Origin: Tubulanus polymorphus | Taxonomy: Eukaryota > Animalia > Nemertea | NCBI RefSeq assembly: GCF_964204645.1 | Contig: NC_134035.1 | Span: 1,364,001 to 1,428,000, forward strand | Direction: 5' to 3' | Length of the DNA stretch: 64,000 nt | Shown: piece by piece, positions 7,208-53,091 of the stretch | Position numbering within the stretch: position 1 is the stretch's first letter | Layout of the letters: each line of letters starts with the position of its first letter | Made by a program: the position numbers and the translations under genes | The notes under the pieces: generated by a model | The model's input: the letters and a program-made list of their open reading frames with translations, nothing else | What the model was told of the DNA's origin: nothing | The model's database searches: none

Positions 7208-7726
7208 TTGTCAATATTTTTGACCAGGGCTAAATCGCAATTTGGGTAATGTTTTAGAGCCTAGACAAAATAAATTCAATTTACTATATTATTGAATCCA
7301 CTGGTTGGGTTCGAGTCCCACATGTGAGATAGGTTTGTTTCTTTTTGTTTGTTTGTTTTTGGCTTAAGGTCTCTTGGAAATTGTTATCCCGAGACAAAAA
7401 ATTCGGATTCCGCAGACTCTTGTACTCCTTTTCTAATTTATGTAAAACAACAAAGTTATTGAATTGGATTGCATTGACAGATCGATCAATCACTTCCGGG
7501 TTTAAAAAAACTTTTTTCCTGCCCCCAGGATTTAGCTGTTAAAGTATCTGTGTGTGCAGAATTGCAAGAACCCGTCATCGCTGTCGCTGTGGAGAGAATT
7601 ATTCGGTTCTTCTTCCCCAGACCCCAGGACAAGACTCCAAATCGCTGCTTCAACATTTTTCAGTTTCTCTACTAGGTCGGGTACTCACTACGACTTTTTT
7701 ACGTATAATAAAAGTCCAAAAACATC
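7208..7726. promoter_or_regulatory. Bidirectional promoter region between PPP1R2 and SMPD2
   Basis: Divergent ATGs 520 bp apart; ETS/GABP-like CACTTCCGG at 7491-7499. Confidence 0.65.
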
Positions 7727-8926
7727 ATGAAAACTGTCGGTGGTAATTTGAAGATCCTGACCCTGAATTGTTGGGGTTTATTTGTGCCGTTTGTTTGTCA
7801 AAAACGACGGGAACGTATGACGGCGATAGCGGCTCGCCTGTCCGAGGGCGAACACGATATCGTCATGTTGCAGGAAGTCTGGTCTCAGTCCGATTACGAG
7901 ATGTTATGTAAGCGAATAACACCGGCGTACGCGTATACGCATTACTTCCACAGTAACTTCATCGGCTCGGGAACGTGCGTGTTTTCCAAATACCCGATCT
8001 ACGAGACGTTTTATCACCGTTACCCGGTGAACGGTCACGCGCATCGGATCCAGCACGGCGACTGGTACGGCGGGAAGGGCGTCGGATTGTGCAAGATCGT
8101 CTACAATGGCGTGCGAATAAACCTGTACGTAACGCACCTTCATGCGGAGTATTCGACGAGTAACGATGAGTACCTGGCGCACCGCGTCGTGCAGGCGTTC
8201 GATATGAGTCAGTTCGTTAAAACGACGAGCGAGACGTGCGACGTCGTCATCGCCGGCGGTGATTTCAACAGTCGCCCGACCGACTGCGGATACTCGCTGC
8301 TCGTTACTAACGCCTCGTTAAAAGACGCGTGGTTGAATCAACGCGAGACGCCCTCTGGTGGCGGCGAGACGTCGGACACGCCCTCGAACCCGTTCACCTG
8401 CAAGAAACATCTGATGGATTTCCCGCTCGGTGAACGCCTCGATTACTTGATGTACCGCGCGAACGCGAGTTTCAGCGTGGACTGCGCGCGTTGCTATCTG
8501 ACGATGGGTCGCGTACCGCGCGAACAGTTCTCCTACTCCGATCACGAGGGGGTCGCCGCCGAGTTGGAGATCAAACGGAACATCACGGCGATGGGCGCCG
8601 AAATCGACTTCGAAAAGCGTAAAGAACATTTGAATCGAGCGTTGAGAATCGTGCAAAGCGGATTCGTTCAGTGTAAAAACGAACGGCTGTATTTCGCGGT
8701 TTATTTCGTAGTGGCGTGCGCCGTGTTGGCGATGCTCGGTTTTACGAGCGCTCCATATGGTCTAGCGATCGTTTGCGGCGTCTTGCGGGTATATTTCACG
8801 TTGTTGATGGCGTACGCCGCGTGGGTCGTGCTCATTATTAAACCGGCCGAAGAGAACGCCTTGTGGAATGCCAAAAAAGACATGTCGAATCTGATCGCGC
8901 AGGAAAAACTTTTATCGCAATTCTGA
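7727..8926 (+). CDS. SMPD2: Neutral sphingomyelinase (SMPD2/nSMase1, Isc1 family), single coding exon, 399 aa
   Basis: EEP-fold motifs TLNCWG, LQEVW, P-loop-like GDWYGGKGVG, THLHAEY, GDFN, RLDY, SDH; two C-terminal hydrophobic helices. Confidence 0.95.
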   Translation: MKTVGGNLKILTLNCWGLFVPFVCQKRRERMTAIAARLSEGEHDIVMLQEVWSQSDYEMLCKRITPAYAYTHYFHSNFIGSGTCVFSKYPIYETFYHRYPVNGHAHRIQHGDWYGGKGVGLCKIVYNGVRINLYVTHLHAEYSTSNDEYLAHRVVQAFDMSQFVKTTSETCDVVIAGGDFNSRPTDCGYSLLVTNASLKDAWLNQRETPSGGGETSDTPSNPFTCKKHLMDFPLGERLDYLMYRANASFSVDCARCYLTMGRVPREQFSYSDHEGVAAELEIKRNITAMGAEIDFEKRKEHLNRALRIVQSGFVQCKNERLYFAVYFVVACAVLAMLGFTSAPYGLAIVCGVLRVYFTLLMAYAAWVVLIIKPAEENALWNAKKDMSNLIAQEKLLSQF

Positions 8927-10069: not shown

Positions 10070-17799
<7,730 letters not shown>

Positions 17800-17990: not shown

Positions 17991-19300
17991 AAGATCTTCA
18001 CTGCATTTACATTTATGGGTTTTGCGTTGATTAGATTTTGCGTTACTGGCTACGGTTCTGCTGTTATCTTTGGAACAAGGAATTATCCGATACTAAATAC
18101 ATAAAATATCTTGGTGAAGATCTTTATATTCGCGTAATTTAGATATTTAAATGACGCTGACAATGTCGACGGTGGATGCGGTTGCTGCGGCAACGTTAAG
18201 ATGGTAACGATGATGATGATTATTTAACCGAGGAGGAAGAACATGAATTTATTAAAGCGCTTTTTCTAATGATTTTAATGAGGTTTAATATTGAATTTAG
18301 ACAACCGAGTTTCTTAGGTCATTATTTCTCCCTGCCCTAGTAGAGTTTATATACAAATTTCCGAAAGGGTTTATTTATGAGGATTTGGTGGATGTTAGGC
18401 TCCCCCTTCCTTCTCCATTCAGATTAGATATTTTTGAAATTTACATTTTTCTTATTGACACTTACGTTTTGTAAAATTTGGTGACTCTTTATTTCACGTA
18501 TGTTTAGATATTTCAGTCACGGATTTATTTGGAATCTCAACCTGAATTGAGACAATGAATTCTGAGATATTGGTTTCCCCAATGACTCAAATAGACCGCT
18601 TTCCCCGTGCATGATGTGAGTTAGTATCTCGGGGTGCATGAACTGTCCTTACGTAGTTGTGACTAATAAACTAATTTCATTAGTAAATGTTTACGCGGTT
18701 TCCATGATATGAAGACCTGTGTTGGTATGAATCTTTAACTGAAGTGCTATCGGTCGGTATAATTTATAAATTATTCTAGAATTTAAGAAAAAAAAACAGG
18801 CGGTGGCTGATAAATTCGGAAGTAGCTGTTGGGAATCAAGTAATTTATTTCATGGCCTTATTAAAGTTCCTCCACTATATTGTTCAGCTGACTACTGGCG
18901 TGTATTCAACCTGGCGGCGGTGGAACCTTTCATAATGTAAACCCATTCAACCATAGAGATACACAATTGCGGGCTTTTCAGAGCTGTTGATATCATTCTG
19001 ACACGCGCTATTGAATACGTTACTGGCTGACCACGGTGTACACAAGCATAGACCATTCACCTCTGCACACTCACACTGTGAACATGCTACCGTGGATTCT
19101 CCTCCTGGCGATCTTCGCTGCGCTCCCGCTCCTGCTCCTGTTCCTGCTTCCTGAGGAACGACGTCTTTATGTTTTATGTGTTACTGTTCGTCTCTGTACT
19201 GTCCTGTACTGTTCCGTGTTAATTAATCCGTTCTATTTTTCAGCCATTAACCCGTTTTATTTTTCAGGGCCGATTTCTCTGTCGAATTTCGACGTTTGCT

Positions 19301-33743: not shown

Positions 33744-36700
33744 ATGCGTACTAACGGCAGCGGAGTCACTAATCAGCAAATCAATCCCGGTCATATCGGA
33801 ATTCATGGACAAAGTGCACGTCAAAACAACGTGTCGAAGTCCACCAGCAGCAGTCATAGTCCTCAAACTTGCTGCGGTTATTCTCAATCCCATCAGACGC
33901 AGTTATTAGAATCGGTCGCCGCCGCTAAAAACACTAACATCATTACAAATATCATGGATCAAAGCGATTGTGCTGTTCGCACGAACGACGCGGTTCCCGA
34001 GGAAATTCGACAGAAAGGATATCAATTTTGTCGCGAGTTTCTCGGAGGTGTTTGGTGTCAAATCGATCCGAGTGCTATTGATATTCGACCGGTTTGGTAA
34101 GTCAAAAGTGCGAGTTAGTCAGTTAGAAACTTTGATTTATCTCCAATAGGCCTCCTTGTCCGTGTCATCGCAAATTGGCAAATTAAGTCGCGAAGTTTAG
34201 CACCCAAATAATCACAGGGAGTCAAAAGTTATTGATTTTGAATCCCTACTAGACCTCCTGATATTTAATTTTTTGAAATAAACATTTCTGTGTAGGGGGA
34301 ATGAAAGTGCAAGAGTGTTGTTAGGTTATTATAGGCTAACAATTACTGTCTGCGTTTTAGAGTGGTAAAACTAAGCAGGCAAGTGGCAACAACTTTAAAA
34401 GAAATGTTTAATTTTTCAAGCATTTACGATGTTATAGAAGTCCTCAGAATATTCAATTGAGGATAAGGGTCTAAAGGGTATAGATAGGGTCTAAAGAGTG
34501 AGGGTAAGAGTAAGGTTTAAGTGGAGTGCTATAAGTGAAACATTAGGTGGAAAATCACAGCGAAAATCAAGAAATTCTGAACCATTTCTTTAAAATCAGG
34601 GGATAAAGAAGAAGTCGAGCAAATTTCAAATTTCTGATGTCTTCTTGTAACGAGTGGCATTATAAGGGACTTAGTGATAAGAAACAGCCTCCACTGAGGA
34701 TGATTTCCTGATGAACCCTGTAATGACTCAGGTTAAGGTTGTAATGAATCTCGCAGGTTTAACCTCTCCACTGAAAACACATTTATATAGGCCTATGCAG
34801 AGCTAGTTTTAGATCTCTCAGGTCTTAAGTTATTATTGAGTTGTTTGTATCATATACATATCATTCAACATAGAATGCAGATTGTGAGATAGGTCTATAT
34901 TGCTCTCATATTTGTCTAGACCTGTTAGTTAGGGATTTAGTCTTGGGCCTATCGTGGCCCTGTGGGTCGAGGTGGGGGTCAGTGGCAGTCCAGAAGGCAA
35001 TTTGGGGGTTCGAACCCTCCTTTTCTGAACAAGTGCCCTTTTGAAATCCACTCGATCTAAACGTTTTATCTCCTGTAAAGATCTTGATCTAAAATATGCA
35101 CTAAAATCGTATGAAAATGAACGTAAATCTGGCGTAGGATCCACTGCAAGCATTTCCCCCTGTGGCGCTCCTCGGGCCCCGGCCCTGACTAGATGCCCTT
35201 TTCATGTGAAATGAATTTCATCTCAAATGATCCGAATAAAGCGGGTTTTACCCACTATACTTATCAAGACATGTTTCTATCACTCGAGGCTCGATATAGG
35301 GCGTAAAAAAACTGGCATTTTTTACCATATAACTGTGTAATGTTTTTCATATATCGCCTTCTGGCAACTATTAATGAGCTTATTGTAAATATCTGGCCTG
35401 TGATATTCTCGATCACCAGCTGGCAAAGGAAAGATCAATATCTTCGAGTTCATTGTCCGTATTTCTATCGACAAAGATGTAGTGAATAGAATAGTAACGT
35501 CTTAATGCATTGATTTCTAATCAATCTTGTCCTCGCGAGTCTCTCCCCCCTCCTCACGAGGACGACTAGACCATTCGCCTTTTGTATTAATTACGTCTGA
35601 TGCAGTTCGAGGTCAACCTATTGTTTTTCGGACATGTGTCGTCCGTGAATCTCTTTGTCGAGGGGGTCTGGGATGATTAATCTGGTTGTCTATACCACCA
35701 GGGGCTGATGAAGGCTGGAAGGAAGGAAATTAATCTAATTATCATATTTTACATATATATTTACTTATGTATTGTGTGGATAGTAAGTAATATCTGAATT
35801 AGATCAAAATCCGGGTTAAACTGATTTGCAGCATTTTCAAGCTGAAGATACGTGCGCTAAACACAAACTGTTATTGTATTTTCTGATCCCCTTGATCCCC
35901 GCAGTGGTCGGTTTAAGTTTGACTCAATTATTGATGGTGTCTGATATTTTGACCATTGAGTCGAATCTTAACCAACAACTCATGGATTGCGTCTAGAAGT
36001 TCACAGTATAATAGCTTCACTGTACAGTACGTACAGTATGTACAGTATGTACAGTATGTACATACTGTTGTATACTGTTTTATTCGATTTTTATGGATAT
36101 TAAAAGACCACAATGTATATATTCCTATTCATTTACATGTATAATCAAAAAAATTTTCAATGAGGGTTCGTAAAAGGGTCAGAGTAAGAGTTCAGCGTTA
36201 GAGTATAAGGTTCAGGTTGAGGGCTATGTATGAATTCCGGTGGTTGTAGAAAGCTGCACTAAGCACGCAGTATGTGATGGGTTCAAATCCTGATTTTTAC
36301 CATTAAATGATGTGTTGTTATCGAAGGGGCTCTGTTTGAGTCAATATAAACGGTTTAATAATGAAATGATTACGATGTTGTTTGATAATTTCAGCGGTGG
36401 TTTGAGTAATCTACTCTACCTGTGTTCGTTGCCCGATGACGTCAGCCCGAGGAACGGTGAACCGCGTCGCGCTCTGCTGCGTATTTACGGTCAGTTGTTG
36501 CAGGAATGCATGGACACGGTGGTCGTCGATTCTGTGATATTCGCGCTGTTGTCCGAAAAGCGTCTCGGACCGAAACTGTACGGCGTATTTCCGGGCGGTC
36601 GCGTCGAAGAGTACATTCCAGTGAGTATCAACTCGTTCGACGCGTAGCAAAACATTGATATTTTTTTGCCTGTGACGAGAGAAATCCCACAATAACGAAG

Positions 36701-39700
36701 CCAAGATTGAAAAAATTCTATATCAGAATGATTGTATTTGAGGAGCGACGTTTCGGCTAACAACTGTTAGCCATCATCAGGCGTACTCAAATTCTAATCA
36801 TTCTGATATAGAATTTTTCAATCTTGGCTTCGTTATTGTGGGATTTCTCTCGTCATCATCGTACACGGATATTGTGTATCTTCTCGTCTAATTTTTTGCC
36901 TGTGTTTTTGTGGCTTTTTCTGCGCTGCAAAAAGCATATTCTGATAGTCGAAATGCTGCCCAATTGTACCTGCATGGCGGCAGGAACGTTACAGAGTCTC
37001 ATGATGCCATCAGTTTCAGTTCCCGCGAGGGAGGAATGTGCCAGAGTATCACGGTGCATCGAAGTTGGTTCTGTTCTGTGAGGGAGTAATTTAACGGGGT
37101 CTCATCGGGTTCAAATCCCTGTGAACAGGATCATTGTGGAGTCACGTGATGCATACCATCAAATCCCCCTGCGCAATGGATGATAATGATATTTTTATTT
37201 ACAGTCGAGAAGTTTAACTACGAAAGAGTTACAAGATCCGGACATATCGGGATACATCGCGAGAATCATGCGAAATTTCCACTCATTAGACATGCCGTTA
37301 TCGAAGGAACCGCGATGGATTTTCGATTTGACCGATAAGTGAGTGTTTGAGAAAAAAAATTACGTCACGTATGTGACGACCAATGTCTATTGCGGTTTCT
37401 CTCGAAATCTGAAGTGAATGAAGTTTTTCGAAAATGAACCTTAGATTTGACAATACATTTCTCTATTTCATGGCCTAATCATAAGAAAATGATGGGAACA
37501 TATCTTTATACTCTGGAAAAAATGTTGACATTGGTTGTTAAGAACCCTTAACCCGTTCAGTGCTGACTAATCAATGCCTTTAAGTGCTGGAGATAATTTT
37601 AAAGAATTCGGCCCCGGTGTGTTGAACACTACTGGCGCACCACTGTAGCGGGTCAACACAGGTGCTGCCATCTTTCATTAGATAATAACATCAATACATG
37701 GCAGTGCGGTGTACCAGTACGTTGTGTATCACTGATTTATACGCTGCACTGTGGTGTAGACGCGCTGAAAGGGTTCAAAGTGCAAAATTTCACCTGAGTT
37801 TTGATGCTTGATGACGTTTTTTTTTTTTTAATGGCGACGATATTTTTCCAGGTGGATCAAAGAATGTCGCGAGTTCACGCCGGAAAATCGCGCGAAGAAT
37901 CTTCAGCAGACGAGTTCGAATCGGGTCCAGCGACCGACCACCGAACAATACGTGAAACTGATGTCTTATAATTACGAAGAGGAATTCGAATGGCTCAGGT
38001 ATGTCAGGTATCAGTCACTGGTCTCGCTCATCGGTCCGCGGTTCTAATCAGTGCAGGGTAGCCACTCAACTTGAAATCAGGGGCCAGTTGCGCAGTCGTG
38101 ACTTAATTCCAAAAGTTGTTAGATTGTCTATAGAACTAAGTTGGTCTTAGACTGGTCTTAGGTCTAAGCCATGACTATGCAACCGGCCGCTGGGATACAA
38201 TCAGCTTTTCTTTTAAGTCTGGGAATAGACAAAGAATTTTTTTTAAAAAAGCTAAAAGTCAAGAGGAAAACGCAAGAATATTAAGGCTTTTGAATGATGT
38301 GAATGAAATATGTCAATTTTGCCTTGCAAAAATGCTTAGAAAGTGCTCAATTTTCCCTAAGCCTTATTGCTATGAACCCTGCTGTTATACGAGCTTACCC
38401 CCCAAAAAAATGAATTACGATCATAGTTAATGAATAAGCGTCCCAATTTCTGGGACAGTTATAAGAGATTGGTCAGTTGGTGACTGAGAGTTTCGAAAAT
38501 CCCAGACAGACTTCGTAGGTTGGTTCTAAATACGGAACAAGAGAAGGAGTTCATTCAATATTCATATCACGTTTCGTCTTGTCTCGCTGAATAGACGTTG
38601 ATGTTCTCGCAGCTGTCTCCTCTTGCTCTGCGTATATTTTTTTTAAAAAGCCACATATTGTTGTAATTGTTTGAACGGTCTTTCTTTCCAACCTAGTCAT
38701 CGAGTATTTCAGACCATTAATTTACATAATAGGAAATGAATAGAACAATAACAACAACTTAGTCAATATCTGGAATAAATGAATTACGGCGTTTAAAACT
38801 TTTGAACAGAGTTTCGGCTGAGTAAAATTGAAATTGATAGAATTAGTAGGCGGGCCTTGTTGCGACCTGCCCTTTGACATTGTTCAACGGTCATATTTAT
38901 TACGTTAAGTTATTACGTAATATTTATGCCAAATCAGGAAAACTCGTCCAAACAACAAGAATCAGATCCCTCAGATGAGACTTGAAAAGAATGATATAAA
39001 GTCGACTTTATTCTAATACTGTCTATACTTTAATCATAAGGCTGAAATAAAACGATACCTTGTTTCTCCTAATCGGCTAGGTCATTTTGTAAACCGCAGT
39101 AAAATTTGTAATCAGCTCATTTCTAGGCCGCCGGCTGTGTCAACTTTTAAACATAGCAGAAATGAGAAACAAAGTATACATTTTTTCTAGCCTAAAATGG
39201 AATATCATTCTATTATTATCACGTAGACAGATTGCACTAAATCTATATCAATATTTCAATCATTCTTTACTGATGATAAAATGATAAGTGAAGACATTAT
39301 ACATGTGCATTATGATGACGATATCAATCTCAATAAATTGTTTTTTAGTATGTGGAAAATCACGAACAACCTAGAGGCCTATATTAAATCGCGATCACCT
39401 CACATGTTAATCGTGAAAGGTTTTGGTCACAGCTGAACTAAACACATGTCACTCAATCCGAATTTATTGATTTAGGTAGTGATATTAGTATCCTCTCAAC
39501 CGGTATTTCAGTAGCCGTGACCATCTGTCCTTCCCGACTGATTCTAGGCATACCGTACGCGATTTCTGATGTAACATTCGACATTTCTGAACTCGAAATA
39601 AACCTTTGTATTCATTATTGGTTTTTGTAGGCAAACTTTGTTGCTGGTGAAATCTCCTGTGGTTTTCTGTCATAATGATTTCCAAGAAGGTACGTATAAA

Positions 39701-42700
39701 TGTATATATTGAGATAACATTGCGTCATGTGTTACCGTCTCGTTAAAACGGCGTTCATACGTGATCCAACCCCTGGATGCTTACCGGGTTTCTCCCTAAA
39801 TTTGCATCTTTCATGGCTTATTTCTTCAAAGATATCTTACACTTAGGATGGGACCTTTGACATGGTTGCATTATTTTAAAAATACCTTTCCGTTCTTATC
39901 AGTATTAAAATGGTTTTTGTTATATGTTGAATCGAGGACATTATCTATGAAATAAAGTGCAAGCCATCGGAATTTTAAATAGTCATAGAAAGCCATTATG
40001 ACAGATATCAGGGCACCGAATTTCTAAATCTGCTGGTGTATGTGTATATGTTAATTATGAACCTTGTCAACAATGATGTCACAGCATGTCGTTATGTCTG
40101 TCTGTCTGTCAATCGCGAGCTGCCTGAATTAAGATGATGTTGGTAGTGAACAGTATGGTGAATATTGTCTTCTAGTCAAATCATCAACTGATTTGTTTCT
40201 GAGTATCATCTCATTACAGCTTTCAACTGCCGGCCTTAGATTGTTCACTGAAGAGATTAACTCTTAAAGGTTTCGTTGTTTCTGGAGTCCATTTTCCCAA
40301 TTGCACATCCATGATTTCTACTGGTGAAAGAATTCCGCCTAACCGCGCGGAGCCCTGGCCTAGTTCAACTGCCCCCCTTCCCCGACTGGACTGAAAAACT
40401 GATTCTGCTGTCACTAAAACATATAAAACGCATAACATTTTTTTTCTCGAATTTCAATAACAGCTTTTATTTGAATTAAAAAAATTGGTCGATTATTGTA
40501 AAGAATAGATGTCGACGTAAAGAGAGAGCTTACACAGCTGTTTTGTACCCGTTGAATGACGTTGATATATTTATTCATCAGTTCGAAAATCAATTTTACA
40601 AAACGATATAAAATGTCATGAAATTGTTTTAACGTCACGCGCGTGTTCTACTAATATTGACGCGAAAAACCGTTTTCATTGTTCGACATTTTGATAAACT
40701 AGATTTATCATTTATTATGATTCGTAATTTTTAGCTGAGAAATACTGATTTGTGAAAATATACAATAGTGTGACTGAAGAGAGTCTTAAGCCAAACGCAT
40801 ACGACAGGCGGATCTAGAAAGGAAAGGATCTATGAAAATTGGATAGCCCCGGTCCAGAAGAAAAGAAAAAGGCATTTTTCAGATAAAATGCTAGCCATGT
40901 CGAAGGCCACTGGCAGGGTCCCATCCTCGATATTAGATATCTTTTGAAGAAATTAACCCGAAAATATGCAATATCCAAGAGAATGACAATATGCCGGTTT
41001 TATCAGTTTTTGACGTGATGAAAAGGCCAACCCCAACGAGAAGGCAATGGCCGGATACCCGGGAACAACCCCTGAAATATTAGATGCTATAGAACATCCC
41101 CTAGAATATTAGATGCTAAAATATTGGACGCTATCGAACACCCCCTGAAATATTAGATGCTATGGATGCCTCTAAATTTGTTTCTAATTGCAGAAACCTA
41201 GATTTCAGTTGCAGACCTGGGTTGGGTATGACTACTACTATCTGAGAGTAGTTTCTACTCATTTTAAGAGCTCAATTACTTCCAAAAATGTCACTCAGAA
41301 TCAGAATAATTTGTAGTTCACTATTTGGTACGCAGGTCTGCAGTTGGTCTCACACCATTGTTTTCAAAACCATGCTGCTATTCATCTAATATAATTTTCT
41401 AAACCATATGTTTATGTATAAATGTTATATCGCACGTTATGTAGACATGTCGCATATTTCTATCGATAGTTACACTGTCGAGATTTCAGGCGACATTTCC
41501 TATGAAACTCGTATCCTGAGAGCGTGTTTTGAACTTTGCTTTCCGGCGAAATAAAAGGCGCTTTACGCGATAACAATTGTCATTCAATCGTTCGTTTTTT
41601 CTATTCGTAGGTAATATCCTATACTTGCCCGGCACCGATGGCAACAGTGATTTCGAATTGATGCCGATTGATTTCGAATATTGCGGTTATAACTACAGGT
41701 AAATATTTAGTTTCGTAGTTACAACTCGTATGAATGTGTAACGGCTTCAGTTATCTGTCGTATTATATCGTATTATTACAGGGTTTGTATTACTCCATTT
41801 AAAAATTCTAGATTCCGCGAAAACTCTTCTCAATTGACGGCCGCACATCTCCTCTAAATATTTGAGAAATTAAACGCTGAACCTGGTCGATTTTCGTTAG
41901 AATCAATTTTTTTAAATGCAAATCTCCCTATGAGATATGAGATCAAATCACACTTAGTAGCACGGAAATGCCTCTTAGATTAATTACTGCTGCAGATTTT
42001 TGTGATATCAGAAAACTCAAAAATTACTATGTAAACATTCTCAAATTTTCACTCAAGAGGTGTTTGGAAGCAACAATAATACAGTGATACTCGTGTCACT
42101 GAATCCGTCTTTTGAAATCATGAAATCTTCGCTAATCTCACTTAAATTGATCGTTGTTCCAGTAAAACTTGTTCTAAGTCGGAATGAATTTCTAGGCCTC
42201 GAATTTCCCAGTTCGTTTTCCGACTTACGCAAGTTTTACTGTCGTACACGTGAAATTCTCGTGATAATCTCGTTTGATTACGCCTTAACCGAATCTGTAC
42301 TGGACATCAGCGCTTAACACTAAGATCTAAGACAATTTTTGGTTCTTTCCTCAAAAGGACTGGATGTGTGTTTTTAACCACTTGAGTACCACCGGGTGAA
42401 ATGTGGGTCGCTACACCGGGTTATTGTTAAACTGCCTGGTATTGATGGGTGTTCATTGATCGTTTACTGCGTGCGGTTGCCACTCTCCTCAAGATTTTGA
42501 TACAGAGGGCACCACTATCGTTGAACTATAAGTACAGTAAAAGTCGTTTATAACGCCGCTGTTGGAACTGACACTATAACACATTTGACATTATAACGAA
42601 TATGTGTTAAAGACAATGGTGTTTTCATTAAATTTGAGTTAGATTTGACAAATCTGTTCTCTGAGAAATGTTTACGTTATCAAATGGGTTTAGATTCGAA

Positions 42701-45700
42701 TTTTCAAAGCAATATGAGCGGGAAAGCTTTCGATAGAACATGCAAAATGTTAGAAACTTGAGGACTATAGTGATTTAACTAATTGATTTCCTAGAGTCGA
42801 AATTCACGAAAAAAGCTGCGGGGATTCCTGTGTTAAACGTGACCTGGTACTCAAGAGGTTAAATCCATCATACGATTAACATCGAAATGATAAGAACCCG
42901 AGCAGACGGACGGACGGATCGGGACCGTCCGGCGGGGACCCCCTCTCCTGTCTAATCTATGTGTCGATGTATGTTAACGTTTTTGTAGAGGATTTGATAT
43001 CGGCAATCATTTCTGCGAGTGGGCGATCGACTACAAGGTCGACGTGCCACCGTTTTACGAGTTTGACGCCGATGGTTACCCGTCGAAGGATCAACAGGTA
43101 ACGAATACAACAGACAATAACAAAAAACAAACGTGTAAAACCACTTCACCGCTCTCCTCTCTCCTCTCTCTTTCTCGATATTATTTCGATATCGAGTTGA
43201 ACCCGGTTGCGAGAGAATATGATTTCGTGTTCGAATATTTGCCGAAGAAACATGGCCGAAATAATCGAGTCTCGAAAAATGCCAATCAAAATATACGCTG
43301 AGGGCCTGATTTGAACATTGACCCTGCAGAGGGGGTTGGTTTTATTGATCAACTGAGGGGGGGGGGGTGGTTTCGTTCGCCAGTTTCAACTCAAACTCGG
43401 GGTTTATTCGTTCACTTTGTGGCTTCATATTCTACATTGTCTATCATGGAATTATCGATTGTATTGTTGATTTAATAGATAGTTCAGCTTTTTCTAATAA
43501 CACTGTAATTGGTTGCGGCATGATGCGTTCAGTTGTACCCCACTTGTAACATCGTTTTTAATGCAGTGTCCACAACTGAAACTGAATTCGGTTATTTTCG
43601 ATGATTTAGTTCATTGCTGATGAAACGTGACTATACGCATGAAGTCTACGCTGCAGATGACGCACGTTGCTCGGATATCCGCGAAGCCATCAAGCTAGAA
43701 ACAGTTAAAGCAGAAGCCCTCTCTGTTTTAAATCCAAAGCCCACCACACACTAGCGACAACCAGCGTACTGAGTTCATCGGCGACATTGACGCCAAAAAC
43801 AATTCACCTGGGCTGGGTTTCATAGATGTGGAAGAAAAATAGTCCCCGGGAACATTTTGAAATTTGTCAGTTATTACCATGGTTTCTCATTGTAACCATG
43901 GTGGTTGTTACCTAGATTGAGGATTTACCCCTAGGGATAACTTTGATACTCAGTCTATGAAACCAGGCCCTGCGCTCTAACTTAGCGTACTGCGTCTGTC
44001 GCTATTGTCAATCATGTGATCAGTCAATCCAATGATATACTCGACTCACGGGTATCTGACTAAATCTGACGGCGAGTAGCTGAATAACACACAGATTCGG
44101 CATATTTGTTACGTCTCAAAAAATTGAAGTGAAAATAACAGTTGAAAATGTGACTAGGTGAATTCTATGCCAGTGAATTTGTTGTGAGGTACTTGGTTAC
44201 AATGCCACATATCGAAGTGGAACCGCGCGCTAGGCGTATTTGTCATGGCGTACTTGTTGCTAGTGTGCGACCACCGGCTTAAGTCGCTCCCATTAACTAT
44301 CCACTAGGTCCGTCTGGTTGGTTATAGCTGCAACTGCACGCATTGTTGCGAACAGTTTCAGTGTAAGACTCGATACTGGGTACTGGACCCTTTTCTCGGT
44401 TTTGGAAAAGGTCTCTCGTGAAATACGGATATGTTGTTTAATAGAAAATCACTTCACCGTCAACTGATTTGGACTCTGCTGTATCCTTTAGACTAGTCGA
44501 CTGTACTATACTATATCTCGTAGTGTTAGTGATGCGGCGCATTTGAAATGAATTTTTTTGGTTGCCGTGGTGCGGTGTACTAGTAAATCCCTCACCAATC
44601 TATACACCGTACTGCAGTATAGATGCACTGAAAGGGTAAAGGAGGGGAAAGGTTACTCTCTGCATGAAAATAAGTCGCAAACATGCGCTGGTTCATTTCG
44701 GCATAGTGGCTGAATATGCGTCGCGATGTGGCGGTGAAGGTGATAAAACGCGACCTATTGAAATAAAAAACCCTACATATCCGTATAAAACCTGTTTCTA
44801 TCGACGAAAATTCATAAAAAACGTGTGCGTTATCGGATGAATTACGGTCATCAACTATCCGGGATAGCGTGTTTACGGCAGCAGCAGCAGCAGCAGCAGC
44901 GTGGTAGAAGTGTGATTACGTTGTCTATTCTAATGTTGTCGGTGGTTTTTTTTCGTTTCAGGGGCTGCGAAATCGGTAATCACTTTTGCGAGTGGTTGTT
45001 CGACTACAACACGACCGGCGCGAATAATAAATCATTTCTCTTCAATCCCAATTGGTTTCCGTCGAGACAACAGCAGGTATTCATTTCCCCGCCGGCCCTC
45101 GAGCCCGAGGCAGGCTTGGCTCTTTTTTGGGGTGATTTTAGTTGCTGATCACAACTGAGTCTTTCAGCGGCACTCATTTATCAATTCCGAACATTTGAAA
45201 TGTATATTCTGATGTAGAATCCCACGCTAATGATCAAATATCATATATTTGTCAACTCAGTTTTCTTGAAGGTGACATTTAGGCTAAGAAAACAACGTGC
45301 TTCGTGAAATAAACATCTTGCTAACGCAAGAGATTAACTGACAGAAAGAGCCAAATCCTCTGGGGCCGGTTCCATAGTCAAGACTTAAGACCAAAAGTGG
45401 TCTTAAATCTTATAGATTGGCTCTAGAACTAAGTTGGTTTTAGACTGGTCTTAACCTGCCAAATCCTCTCATCAATTAACTTGTGAATTTCTATTTTTGA
45501 AATTACAACTTTGGCATCGATTATATTTTTCACCAATTTCTTGTGTTTCAATAGATGCAATGATAATGATCGTGATACTGTGAATTATATACGCTGAGCC
45601 TGTAACCTGACGGCCGTAAACGGCAACTAAAATCACCCGCAAGTCGCCGCCAGCCTCAGCTTTACGCTTGCACGTCACAGCTCACAACTCTTCTTCTACT

Positions 45701-48700
45701 CACGTGTGTATATATCTGTTGAGATGTGTCGCAAAAATCGTCGATTTCAATAATAATGTGATTTCTCGTTATTATACCAGGTAGTAATAACAATACGGTC
45801 CCTATGACTCCTTGATTCCTTGAAAACTCATTCGAAATGGAGAATGCTTTTCAAGCTGCTCGAAACTCCTTTAATTCGAACAAAATGCCAAATATTCCTT
45901 TAAAACTTATTCGATTTCGAGAAATAGGCAATGAGAAGTTGTACTGTAGACTACACCTAAATCGATACAGTTGGAAACAGGATCTTTTTCTTACAATATT
46001 AAGTGGTTTACAAATAAGAAACTGAGTTTTAGACGTGTCAAGGATGTAAATTTGCTCACAAAACCACCGAATTAATGGTTTTATTGAGATAAGCAAGTAC
46101 CGATTTAGGAATCTACAGTTATTTGGATATGAAAGTGATGCACACGCTTCCTCGAAATTTGAAATTTTTCCTTTAAAACTCTTTATATCAAGGAATGATT
46201 GATTTGTAGGGACTCTGTATATCGTGCTATACTAGGGGAATCGTTCTTCTAGTGTTCTGTACACAGTGGATCTGCCTACCAGTGCTGGCCTACTTTCAGA
46301 ATGATACCGATTATCGTTTCAAACCAGCCAAAAACTACTCAAACAAATTGGCAAATCCCTTGTGAGGCAGATCTGCTGGTTTGTGATATGTTTGTTTCAT
46401 CGATGTCCACTTCATCAAGTTTTAAAAGCGTTGAAAAACCGCGTTCGACCAATAATTCATTAGAATTCCAGTTACTGCTATCAGCATTCTTGTGTCTTTG
46501 ACGTTTTCTGTAAATTGGCGAAAGTAATTTGTATTTGGTGTTAGGCTCGTTCATCTGATGTAATTAGTTCAAGTCCCAGGAGCCGTGCGAGTGTTATACT
46601 GTGGAACTGGGCTCATTAGGTCAGGGTCATTCTGTGTCAGTCGGTTTTTCCTTGATTAATGCGGATGAATCTTTTAGGGGGAATTAATTCGACATGTTGC
46701 TTATTGTCAATGACTGATATATTTGCTGTAGGGACAATAGTTGGAAGAGAGTTTGAACGTAGAACATGATGTAAGAAACTACCAGGGGACCTCATCGCTG
46801 CGACGAATTCCAGGGAACCAGAAAATCTGTTTGTTATACGTTCATTATAACCTGTAGTTCTGGAACAGTGCAACCTCATTAAAATGAACTTCAAGTTTCC
46901 AGAAATCAGTTTGTTATAACTGTAGCCACGCCCAGCATTTTAGGCAAAGGCCAATCTGGGCCAAATCATCTCCGTGTGATCACGGCTCATACGCAGTGGT
47001 CGAAAACTTCAAGATACCCAAAAAGGCACTTGATAGCAAGACTTAATGAGCAGGAGCAGGAGCAGATGATCGGATAGACCTTGCTCTGTATGCAGATGTT
47101 TGTGAACAATACGATTTGTTCCCTGTGAACATTAACTGCTGGACCCAGTTCCACAGTTGTGAGTTAGAGTTAACTGAGTTAAAGTTAGTTCATTTTCAAT
47201 GATTTAACTCAGAGTTAGATCTTAACTCGGAATTATCGAACTGGGCCCCGGTGATCACTCCCAGCGGTCACTCCCAATCCGCAGCTCCATAAGAATGTCC
47301 ACGTATTTGTGATACAGATGTCATATTCTAACAGATGTCATATTCTAACGTAGACACGTGTCATTGATTTGTGATTGATATAGGAGATGCAGCTTGGAGT
47401 AGTTACTCAAGTGTATTACTTGCACTAGGTAACACGTGTTCCTAATTGCTGACGACGTAACCGTAACCGTGGTGAACATTTAACAACCGCAAAATTGAGA
47501 CCCAAATCGGGAGCCAGTTCCGCAGCTGTTCGTTATGGTTGACAACTAGATTAAATCAATTTTCATGGCATGGTTTTATAACTTAACCGTTTCACTGCAA
47601 ACAAGTTGAATTGGGTCCTGTATTTCTATGGGATGAATTGGGTCCTGTATTTCTATGGGATGAATTGGGTCCTGTATTTCTATGGGATGAATTGGGTCCT
47701 GTATTTCTATGGGATGAATTGGGTCCTGTATTTCTATGGGATGATTTGGGTCCTGTATTTCTATGGGATGATTTGGGTCCTGTATTTCTATGGGATGATT
47801 TGGGTCCTGTATTTCTATGGGATGAATTGGGTCCTGTATTTCTATGGGATGAATTGGGTCCTGTATTTCTATGGGATGATTTCACAAATCGATGAAGCAA
47901 ATAGCGTGTGTATTATGTTTAAGCGTCGTCTATGCTGTATTCTGCACAAATCTTCGTAACAAATTAACATTGATTTCTTTCTTCCTTTTTACAGGATGAT
48001 TCTGATTCGTAATAATGTCGCAAATATTACTAATCAATTATCGATAAACGATACTATAAACATTTCAGGAACATGTATTACTGATATTATATACAGCTGC
48101 GTTCTGCATGTTCCTTTTCCCAATCATGGTCAATCAACAGCGAACTGATTTTCAATCAGTCTCCACTCGGTTTACGCGGTTCTCGAATACATTTTACTCT
48201 TGATTTAGAATTATTTTCAATTCCAATGTTTTAACCCTGGGCAGATCTGATTACGACTACTATTCGAGAGTAGTTTCTCCTTTTTGGGAGATAGGAAAAT
48301 ATTCTTAAAAATCTGAATAATTACAAATTCATTTTCAATGAAACTGCATGTACTATCATTGAGAGAAACCCAAAATTTCATTTTTAACAACTGGTTTTTT
48401 TTCTTATGTTTCCAATGGAATCCTTGAATCCATCTTCGGAGATAATCTGAAAAAAATTCAAATTTCATTGTATATTCTCTCAATGGTATTATCAAGACTG
48501 GAAATAGTCTCAACTATTAAAAATACATGTAATATTTTCAGTGTTAATTTACTCTGATTTTTGTTGATGACTTTATATTGATTAGCGACTTGTAGTCTGG
48601 TCTGCTTAGGTTAAAATCTCAACTGGGAACCGTGAAACTGGGTTCTGATTGTTTGGGTTTGAAGCTTCGTTCATTATTGTTTTTAAATGATTTTTGCTTG

Positions 48701-50486
48701 TTGTAAGTTTTAGTTGCTTGTATACAATTAATGTGCGTAGAATTATTCAGTTCATGTAGGCTTCGTAGTTAATTCTGCACCGAGGTCAAAATGTTATTCC
48801 TGGGTCTATTCATCCTCCCTCTGCAGGGATTTGAACCTGATGGCATCGCTACACTCAGCCACGGCACAAAACCTTGCCACACTAGACCGGGTGCGCGGCT
48901 ATATGCGCAGGTTTACCGCATGAAAACTAGCTGCACCAATCAGATTGCCTGTTTTATTATAATTGCTGAGGCAATTTCATGGATAAACTATAAACGGCAA
49001 AAAAACCTGAGCGATAATAAAACGGGATTTCTGATTGGCTAATAATGACATTATCTACGCTGCACATGTAGCTGTGCACACGGTCTAGTGTGGCAGGGTT
49101 TCATACTGTGGCGATATCGATGCCATCAGGTTCAATCAGGACGGGGTCAACTTTGCCCTTGGTCCGAAAAAAATCCCGTGAAGTTGATTACATGTGAATT
49201 TGGTTTATATTTTCATAATTCTTGAAATAATTTTCGTCGATTTCGAATTCGTCGATGATAAAAACGTTTTATTTTCTGACGATTTTTCGATTAGGTACAT
49301 TTCGTGAAGGAATACTTGAAGGCGAATCGCGGCTCGAATTGCGCCGATCCCGGAGATGAAGAGATCGAGAATATTCTCGTTGAAGCGAACACGTTCGGTT
49401 TAGCCTCTCACTTTATGTGGGTTCTCTGGTCACTGATACAATACAACATATCATCAATAGAATTCGATTATTTGGTACGTAGAATATTATTTGTTAACCC
49501 TTTCAGTGCGTCTACACCGCAGTGCGGTGTACGAATCAGTGATGGATTTTGCTAGTACACCGCACTGTGGTGTATTGATTTAATTAGTAATTACTAATTA
49601 TCTCTCTTGAAAGATGGCAGCACCTGTCAAACATAGTGAAATATTAGTAACTAACGATATACCGCGCCAGGGTGTAGACGCACTATAGTGGTATTCCCGT
49701 TAAAATTTTCAAATTATCTCCAGCACTATAAGGTATTTATTAGTCAGCACTGAAAGGGTTAAACTACCATATGTTGCTCTCTAGACCCTGCACCGCCTTT
49801 CAGATATTCGATATTAACTTCATCCCCGTCCTTCAGATTTCCGATCATCCACACTTCACTTCTGTGTTAAGAGCTTCATCCGATACATGTCTAATTGAAA
49901 ATGAACTGTCAACACACAACTTGACATTTTACGGGCACACTTTCAAAAACTGATCCTCCACACATGTGTTCAACACTTCAACTGAGATATTTTTGATTGA
50001 AAATGAACTACGATACTGATCACCAGGATCCAGTTCCACTCATGAGTTGAGATTAGTCCCTTTCAATGTTTTAACTCAAACTGGAACTTAACTTAACTTG
50101 GAACTGTGGAACTGGATCCAAGACTTCAAAAGTTATTGTCTGAAGGGATGCAGGTCAAAAAATTCAAATACATTCTTAGGGTTCTGAGCCAGATTCCACA
50201 GTTGTGACTGAGTTAGAGTTAACTTTTGAGTTAGAATCAGTTCATTTTCAATGTTTTAACTCTAGAATCAAATTTAACTCAGAACTGTGGAACTGGATCC
50301 TGAATTTGGCCAACTAGTCTTTATCTCACAAACAACCACGAGTCTACTGACATGTTTTTTGTTTTCTAATTTCAGGAATACGCGGAAGTTCGACTGGACT
50401 GCTATTACCAGTTGAAGAATAATCTGCCGATATTGCGAAATCAAGAAGGTGCTTACGGTAAAAATGGCGGCGAGACCGACGACTGA
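33744..50486 (+). CDS. Choline/ethanolamine kinase (CHKA/CHKB-like), 9 exon positions with alternative exon 7a/7b, 468/470 aa
   Basis: Exons 33744-34096, 36395-36620, 37205-37338, 37852-37998, 39631-39689, 41611-41698, [42989-43097 or 44962-45076], 49295-49474, 50376-50486. Motifs CREFLGGVW, GGLSN, LLRIYG, LGPKLYGVFPGGRVEEYIP, Brenner motif [58 protein letters not shown]. Start could instead be ATG 33954. Confidence 0.95.
36673..36855. mobile_element. Palindromic Penelope-like remnant (~60-bp near-perfect arms) in choline kinase intron 2
   Basis: TGACGAGAGAAATCCCACAATAACGAAGCCAAGATTGAAAAA.TTCTATATCAGAATGATT and its reverse complement enclose a hammerhead core. Confidence 0.7.
36737..36791 (-). 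ncRNA. Minimal type I hammerhead ribozyme motif
   Basis: Minus strand TTTGAGTAC-GC-CTGATGA-T-GGCTAACA-GT-TGTTAGCC-GAAA-CGTC-GC-TC-CTCAAA: intact CUGAUGA and GAAA, 8-bp stem II, palindromic ACGU stem III, GUC triplet. Confidence 0.65.
42989..43097 (+). CDS. Choline kinase alternative exon 7a (canonical-type)
   Basis: TTTTTGTAG|A GGA TTT... [42 protein letters not shown]; 109 nt, phase 2 to 0. Confidence 0.92.
43811..43969. mobile_element. MITE family D (Harbinger-like) with CTG target duplication
   Basis: CTG|GGCTGGGTTTCATAGA...TCTATGAAACCAGGCC|CTG; tandem pair of relatives at 54906-55118. Confidence 0.75.
44962..45076 (+). CDS. Choline kinase alternative exon 7b (divergent paralogous exon)
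   Basis: TTTCGTTTCAG|G GGC TGC... [44 protein letters not shown]; 115 nt, phase 2 to 0, no stops. Confidence 0.88.
47607..47880. repeat. 27-bp minisatellite, ~10 copies
   Basis: GAATTGGGTCCTGTATTTCTATGGGAT tandem; source of three spurious repetitive ORFs. Confidence 0.97.
48831..49135. mobile_element. ~305-bp fold-back element
   Basis: TTGAACCTGATGGCATCG..GCCACACTAGACCG..CCAATCAGA / TCTGATTGG..CGGTCTAGTGTGGC..CGATGCCATCAGGTTCAA. Confidence 0.8.
49498..49758. mobile_element. piggyBac-like MITE, full length
   Basis: TTAA|CCCTTTCAGTGC ... GCACTGAAAGGG|TTAA; TTAA begins at intron position +20 after exon 8. Confidence 0.85.
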
Positions 50487-52489: not shown

Positions 52490-53091
52490 TGCCTGTGACA
52501 GACTAGGTGATCACTGCCTGGGGAAAACAGTGTGATCACTTCCTGGGACAGACTAGGTGATCACTGCTTGGGACAGACTAGGTGATCACTGCCTGGGGCA
52601 AACAGTGTGATCACTGCCTGGGACAGACTAGGTGATCACTGCCTGGGGCAAACAGTGTGATCACTGCCTGGGACAGACTAGGTGATCACTGCCTGGGGCA
52701 AACAGTGTGATCACTGCCTGGGACAGACTAGGTGATCACTGCCTGGTGCAGACTAGGTGATCACTGCCTGGGGCAAACAGTGTGATCACTTCCTGGGACA
52801 GACTAGGCGATCACTGCCTGGGACAGACTAGGTTATCACTGCCTGGGGCAAACAGTGTGATCACTTCCTGGGACAGACTAGGCGATCACTGCCTCGGACA
52901 GACTAGGTTATCACTGCCTGGGGCAAACAGTGTGATCACTTCCTGGGACAGACTAGGCGATCACTGCCTGGGACAGACTAGGTTATCACTGCCTGGTGCA
53001 GACTAGGTGATCACTGCCTGGGGCAAACAGTGTGATCACTTCCTGGGACAGACTAGGCGATCACTACCTGGGGCAAACAGTGTGATCACTC
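52490..53091. repeat. 25-bp minisatellite with two monomer types in higher-order AB/AAB pattern
   Basis: A=GGGACAGACTAGGTGATCACTGCCT, B=GGGGCAAACAGTGTGATCACTGCCT; palindromic GTGATCAC core. Confidence 0.95.

Follow-up and report, generated by a model that had tools for sequence, protein, structure and literature searches.

Tandem exon duplication with mutually exclusive splicing has been reviewed previously, and known examples include exons 7a/7b of ATE1, 5a/5b of SNAP25 and 4a/4b of OGDH (PMC8373072, PMC9741552, PMC9013439). Choline kinase, which is a drug target, carries out the first step of phosphatidylcholine synthesis. The human enzymes CHKA and CHKB (PDB 2CKQ, 3G15 and 2IG7) possess the same motifs and fold as the choline kinase of the nemertean Tubulanus polymorphus discussed below. 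Human diversity is provided by these two genes together with an 18-residue cassette (residues 155-172), and the segment corresponding to exon 7 of the Tubulanus gene is not swapped. The CHKA and CHKB isoforms differ in their sensitivity to hemicholinium, a difference traced to L419/F352, which a different exon encodes (PMC2871500).

We describe here a duplicated, mutually exclusive exon 7 in the choline kinase gene of T. polymorphus. The gene lies in a 64,000-nt stretch of contig NC_134035.1 (assembly GCF_964204645.1, positions 1,364,001 to 1,428,000), referred to below as the window. The first-pass annotation of this DNA knew of no described pair at this position, and we likewise found no paper on mutually exclusive choline kinase exons in the largely open-access literature; the text of the C. 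elegans exon catalogue does not mention choline kinase.

Results

The choline kinase gene of T. polymorphus consists of nine coding exons on the + strand, spanning positions 33744 to 50486 of the window. The coding part of exon 1 (33744-34096) starts at the ATG and agrees with the RefSeq protein, exon 2 (36395-36620) encodes the ATP loop of the N-lobe, and exons 3 (37205-37338) and 4 (37852-37998) precede exon 5 (39631-39689), which encodes the HND of the Brenner motif. Exon 6 (41611-41698), which is constitutive in Tubulanus, encodes the DFE motif. Exon 7, encoding the F-helix and groove loop, is present as a canonical copy, 7A (42989-43097), and a second copy, 7B (44962-45076). Exon 8 (49295-49474) and the coding part of exon 9 (50376-50486) complete the gene, the latter containing the stop codon and providing the same terminus as in the RefSeq proteins.

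Exons 7A and 7B measure 109 and 115 nt, respectively. They are flanked by an AG acceptor with its pyrimidine tract and by a GT donor, and the reading frame enters each of them in phase 2 and leaves in phase 0; every coordinate, length, splice site and phase reported for the pair by the first-pass annotation was verified in the sequence. In a pairwise comparison the encoded peptides (36 and 38 residues) share 16 identical residues, and tblastn within the window detected their homology with an E value of 5e-8. The 2 exons are homologous, adjacent and on the same strand, as expected of tandem duplicates. Within the window we detected no third copy of exon 7 and no doubling of the remaining exons, and the T. 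polymorphus genome contains one choline kinase locus, in which only exon 7 is doubled.

The window also contains several repeats and other coding segments. High-copy repeats occupy the introns around 7B (43806-43972, 44435-44630 and from 45360), with a summed contig depth of up to ~36,000 compared to 37 for unique DNA. Nested inverted repeats at 48831-49135, 160 nt upstream of exon 8, have 21-nt arms that are 95% identical and 53-nt arms that are 81% identical, and resemble a miniature inverted-repeat element. Minisatellites are located at 47607-47879 (27-nt unit, 10 copies at 99%) and 52490-53090 (25-nt unit, 24 copies). An open frame of 404 codons 25 kb upstream (7712-8923) matches PF03372 (exonuclease/endonuclease/phosphatase) and is, judged by eye, presumably a neutral sphingomyelinase, another choline-lipid enzyme, while we take exon-like frames at ~11567-13593 and 16643-16966 to resemble the cleavage factor CPSF3.

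Inclusion of 7A alone leads to a protein of 468 aa, and that of 7B alone to one of 470 aa. The first-pass annotation had argued that including both exons or neither would shift the frame, and translation of the respective joins bore this out: joint inclusion of 7A and 7B ends translation at residue 377, with the last junction 277 nt further on, while skipping of both ends it at residue 339, with 167 nt remaining to that junction. Nonsense-mediated decay usually acts on mRNAs whose stop codon lies well ahead of the final junction, and we infer that it removes the out-of-frame products. Because both alternatives lead to such early stops, only one copy can be present in each in-frame mRNA. The 7A and 7B models correspond letter for letter to RefSeq proteins XP_074659766.1 (isoform X2) and XP_074659765.1 (isoform X1), respectively. 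A protein search in which both exon peptides were aligned to the frame of a natural distant kinase led to X2, and the cluster also contains X1. Both isoforms are already in public RefSeq, as automatic annotation without a description of the duplication or its function. Support for 7A consists of this annotation together with its conservation, and the RefSeq 7A model may be based on RNA or solely on protein homology.

Four public runs, belonging to one study and 2 samples, contained the stretch, in each case as contigs. In one of these, a 2041-nt contig with a depth of 74.5 contained GT-AG joints between exons 5 and 6 and between exons 6 and 7B, skipping 7A. The 6>7B junction (41698>44962), one of those proposed as a check by the first-pass annotation, is present, and the accompanying doubt over whether 7B is used has its answer: 7B is the copy for which splicing was observed. 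No junction into 7A (41698>42989) was listed in these 4 contig-only runs, nor was a 7A>7B joint listed among their contigs. Since contigs drop minor variants, the missing 7A joint does not make 7A silent, although the contig hints that 7B was the main form in the sampled RNA. Taken together, the frame logic, the 2 matching RefSeq isoforms and the spliced 6>7B contig support the proposal that 7A and 7B are a mutually exclusive pair. At a minimum, the reading frame enforces exclusive use, and splicing of 7B is established.

At ~1.9 kb, the spacing of 7A and 7B is incompatible with exclusion on simple steric grounds, for which the intron would have to be very short. In the surrounding 7.6-kb stretch, the two islands with the highest GC content flank the pair, one preceding the 7A acceptor and the other following the 7B donor. 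They contain candidate pairing elements on the + strand, one in the intron upstream of the 7A acceptor (42929-42938) and the other just past the 7B donor (45086-45095), which form a perfect 10-bp complement (about -33 kcal/mol with extension). The upstream island was also computed to be able to form a local hairpin. This helix, the best of 28 pairs and chosen post hoc, was equalled in 41 of 3000 strict island shuffles, and unlike the standard docking/selector layout it encloses both exons. We regard it as a candidate only for a role in exon choice.

The 2 copies have diverged extensively at synonymous sites. Over 22 alignable codons, dN was 0.19 and dS ~1.6 (Fisher P 0.001), while over 31 codons dN was 0.34 and dS was saturated (Fisher P 0.0004). 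If one copy were neutral, pN would be expected to lie near 0.5 at the point estimate of dS, compared to the observed 0.17-0.28; with dS set to its lower bound, the data are compatible with a neutral 7B (P 0.26-0.33). These values, which come from few sites, indicate that both copies are likely under constraint. The many synonymous differences mentioned in the first-pass annotation amount to a different codon at 5 of the 15 shared residues compared (pS ~0.66, from only ~12 synonymous sites). The introns flanking 7A and 7B can be aligned only over ~40 nt of the acceptor region. The duplication is old, and 7B is the derived copy, with 7A closer to the family consensus.

In human choline kinase alpha (4da5), the exon 7 peptide corresponds by alignment to residues 340-375, a segment that, as the first-pass annotation stated, includes the pocket residues E349 and Y354. 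Choline is bound by the F-helix glutamate E349, and N345 is a signature residue of the family (PMC4702295), while Y354 and F361 line the hemicholinium-3 groove (PMC2871500). Residues N345, E349, W350, D353 and Y354 (human numbering) are identical in 7A and 7B. The earlier list of differences between the exons was incomplete, overlooking F341C and D342E in 7B, both of which affect near-invariant positions. In a mostly vertebrate set of homologues, position 341 is aromatic in 167 of 167 and position 342 is Asp in 166 of 167; 7A retains the conserved D342, while 7B has Glu. In addition, 7B has lost P360, kept as Pro in 134 of 140 mostly vertebrate homologues, and the groove residue F361, kept as Phe or Tyr in 130 of the 140, and its loop is 2 residues longer, a length found in none of them.

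Both isoforms are predicted to fold as choline kinases (pLDDT 89 and 92). The predicted 7B model matches human choline kinase with a TM score of 0.83 and 45% identity, and Pfam PF01633 was matched over the whole domain by both isoforms, with 325 bits for 7A and 297 bits for 7B against a cut-off of 29. The Brenner motif, the DFE motif, N345, E349 and a kinase-like predicted fold are thus present in each. In both predicted structures exon 7 comprises the helix after the DFE motif, a short strand-loop-strand and the start of the next helix, and D342 or E342 is part of the opening turn of the first of these helices. Judging from this position, D342 is probably the F-helix aspartate, equivalent to D220, a conserved residue that supports the catalytic loop in kinases (PMC1821047). 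Since F361 lines the hemicholinium groove and is lost from 7B, it is plausible that the 2 isoforms differ in groove shape or in their sensitivity to inhibitors.

We compared the locus with 13 other animal loci spanning exon 6 to exon 8, namely those of Capitella, Paralvinella and the soft coral Dendronephthya, together with ten metagenome contigs whose peptides were annelid- or chordate-like. All 13 contained a single exon 7, and the exon 7 pair was accordingly absent from the loci examined in other phyla. Exon 7B alone, searched against 1.84 billion representatives, matched three unrelated repeat proteins only, a result of little weight for so short a query under the length filter of the search; 7B with its open frame returned no candidate from a 5.8-billion set, which likewise carries little weight. 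An invertebrate kinase profile search returned mostly vertebrate matches, and generic choline kinase clusters were all that was found in the ESM Atlas.

The annelid loci contained a pair of a different kind, in exon 6. The Capitella teleta copies are 79 and 94 nt long (L078:2060-2138 and 2709-2802), and those of Paralvinella palmiformis 79 and 97 nt (L079:16569-16647 and 17992-18088). All are intact, with AG/GT ends, the same phase and frame-enforced use, and the short and long types correspond between the 2 species. The long copy is used in the public proteins of both Capitella and Paralvinella. A short and a long type are also present in two intronless contigs whose run numbers are adjacent and which, outside exon 6, are 88% and 81% identical; this suggests that both types are spliced. 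We found no paper on this pair in the largely open-access literature. A hidden second exon 6 in Tubulanus was considered and rejected, as a single exon 6 was found. Since exon 6 is single in Tubulanus and exon 7 is single in annelids, these pairs represent 2 separate duplications, affecting adjacent exons of one motif.

Other loci varied in further ways. In a profile scan, annelid-like metagenome contigs L032, L037, L039, L054, L055 and L062 contained the short exon 6 type only, and L052 (2163-2230) contained a broken, partial second copy; it is possible that the long copy was lost in the lineage of those annelid-like contigs. Xenia sp. has 21 annotated choline kinase proteins, which come from several nearly identical copies of the gene on a single scaffold, reflecting either a gene-level expansion or an assembly artefact. 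The 620-aa choline kinase of Cordylochernes scorpioides was rejected as an instance of the exon 7 pair: it has a multi-exon internal repeat of most N-terminal exons, and is probably a fused tandem gene model.

Discussion

We propose that exon 7 was duplicated in tandem long ago, giving rise to a mutually exclusive pair in the sole choline kinase gene of T. polymorphus. Under this model the 7A version would be the standard choline kinase, while the 7B version would keep the core of the choline pocket, with F341C and D342E altering the start of the F-helix and with an outer groove loop that is rebuilt, 2 residues longer and devoid of P360/F361. The choice between 7A and 7B would then adjust the flux toward phosphatidylcholine according to tissue or stage. 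Based on the alignments and predicted structures, we lean toward the view that 7B is an active choline kinase with a changed rate, affinity, stability or inhibitor sensitivity, and one gene probably makes 2 differently tuned enzymes.

The first-pass annotation had inferred 2 kinases that differ in head-group preference (choline versus ethanolamine or another amino alcohol) or in inhibitor sensitivity. In the head-group version, 7B would favor ethanolamine, a methylated ethanolamine or another amino alcohol. Such a shift is conceivable given that pocket residues E349 and Y354, as well as groove residue F361, are encoded by the exon, that the loop is rebuilt in 7B, and that in small-molecule kinases the F-helix region serves generally as a site of specificity (PMC4702295). 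However, a choline-versus-ethanolamine switch fits poorly with the choline-contacting residues of the exon, the mapped pocket positions being the same in 7A and 7B, and with the location of the remaining pocket residues (W420, W423, F435 and Y440) in shared exons. The ethanolamine kinase type is recognized by a short loop after NHFxEW that lacks DY. Neither copy has this trait, and the retention of DY and the long loop led us to reject 7B as an ethanolamine-kinase-like exon. Moreover, T. polymorphus possesses a separate locus of the ethanolamine kinase type, with the short loop, on the minus strand of C11 near 4.89 Mb (about 4891300-4894900); an intron of that gene cuts the exon 7 segment directly after the NHFCEW motif. 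We consider a head-group shift unlikely, and the residues involved make an effect of 7B on catalytic rate and the outer groove likelier than one on choline-to-ethanolamine preference.

It is more doubtful still that 7B encodes a low-activity or nearly dead regulatory subunit, acting for example by pairing with 7A subunits in heterodimers or by reducing the overall activity. The F-helix start differs in 7B at 2 near-invariant residues, and choline kinases are dimeric, with homo- and heterodimers differing in activity (PMC8226952), both of which would suit a regulatory role. Nevertheless, the catalytic residues are intact and are encoded by shared exons, the change from Asp to Glu is conservative and is found in one other homologue, and D220 has been lost from some kinase families that remain active (PMC1821047). 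Furthermore, the sole spliced contig keeps 7B, suggesting that it is the main form there of a single-copy housekeeping gene.

We assign a similarly low probability to a near-neutral pair or exon turnover, in which 7B has replaced a rarely used 7A or the 2 enzymes are equivalent. This would account for the lack of a 7A junction among the contigs of the 4 runs and for the single exon 7 of the 13 other animal loci. It is less readily reconciled with the state of 7A, which is intact, nearer to the family consensus and equipped with good splice sites, or with synonymous sites that are near saturation while both frames remain open, and a parallel pair in the adjacent exon has been retained across distant annelids. 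Finally, we rejected as highly improbable an assembly artefact (haplotypes placed side by side) or the tail of a second gene copy, because identity between the copies is only 44% and their introns are unrelated, the doubling is confined to exon 7 of a single locus, and a DNA-like run covers both exons unspliced, in long pieces and at an even depth of 33-40.

Returning to 2 differently tuned enzymes as the preferred reading, the natural isoforms of T. polymorphus are otherwise identical and differ only in the start of the F-helix and the outer groove loop, and they would therefore provide a clean test of these elements, including the poorly understood F-helix aspartate. A broader reading holds that a switchable choline kinase motif arose independently in two lophotrochozoan lineages, through exon 7 in this nemertean and exon 6 in annelids, and that 7B is in addition tissue-regulated, with either a new substrate range or a catalytic loop re-tuned through a natural F-helix Asp-to-Glu change; this combined reading we put forward tentatively, as a fairly improbable possibility. 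Surprise at the pair is limited by its common splicing design and by the fact that both proteins were already annotated automatically, while interest in it is raised by the unusual, expressed copy 7B and by the annelid parallel.

As in known mutually exclusive exons, 7A and 7B are homologous neighbours with the same phases and a frame-shifting length, and they swap part of a conserved domain; unlike in the described examples, the gene is choline kinase and the lineage is one not represented among them. The pair is thus an undescribed member of a well-known class whose splicing design is common. The annelid exon 6a/6b pair involves the same gene and the same design in the adjacent exon of the same motif, with lengths of 79 versus 94/97 nt, but affects the DFE motif and the preceding loop, and hence a different exon from the Tubulanus pair. 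This parallel suggests that invertebrates with a single choline kinase gain isoform diversity by exon swapping, whereas vertebrates do so by means of 2 genes.
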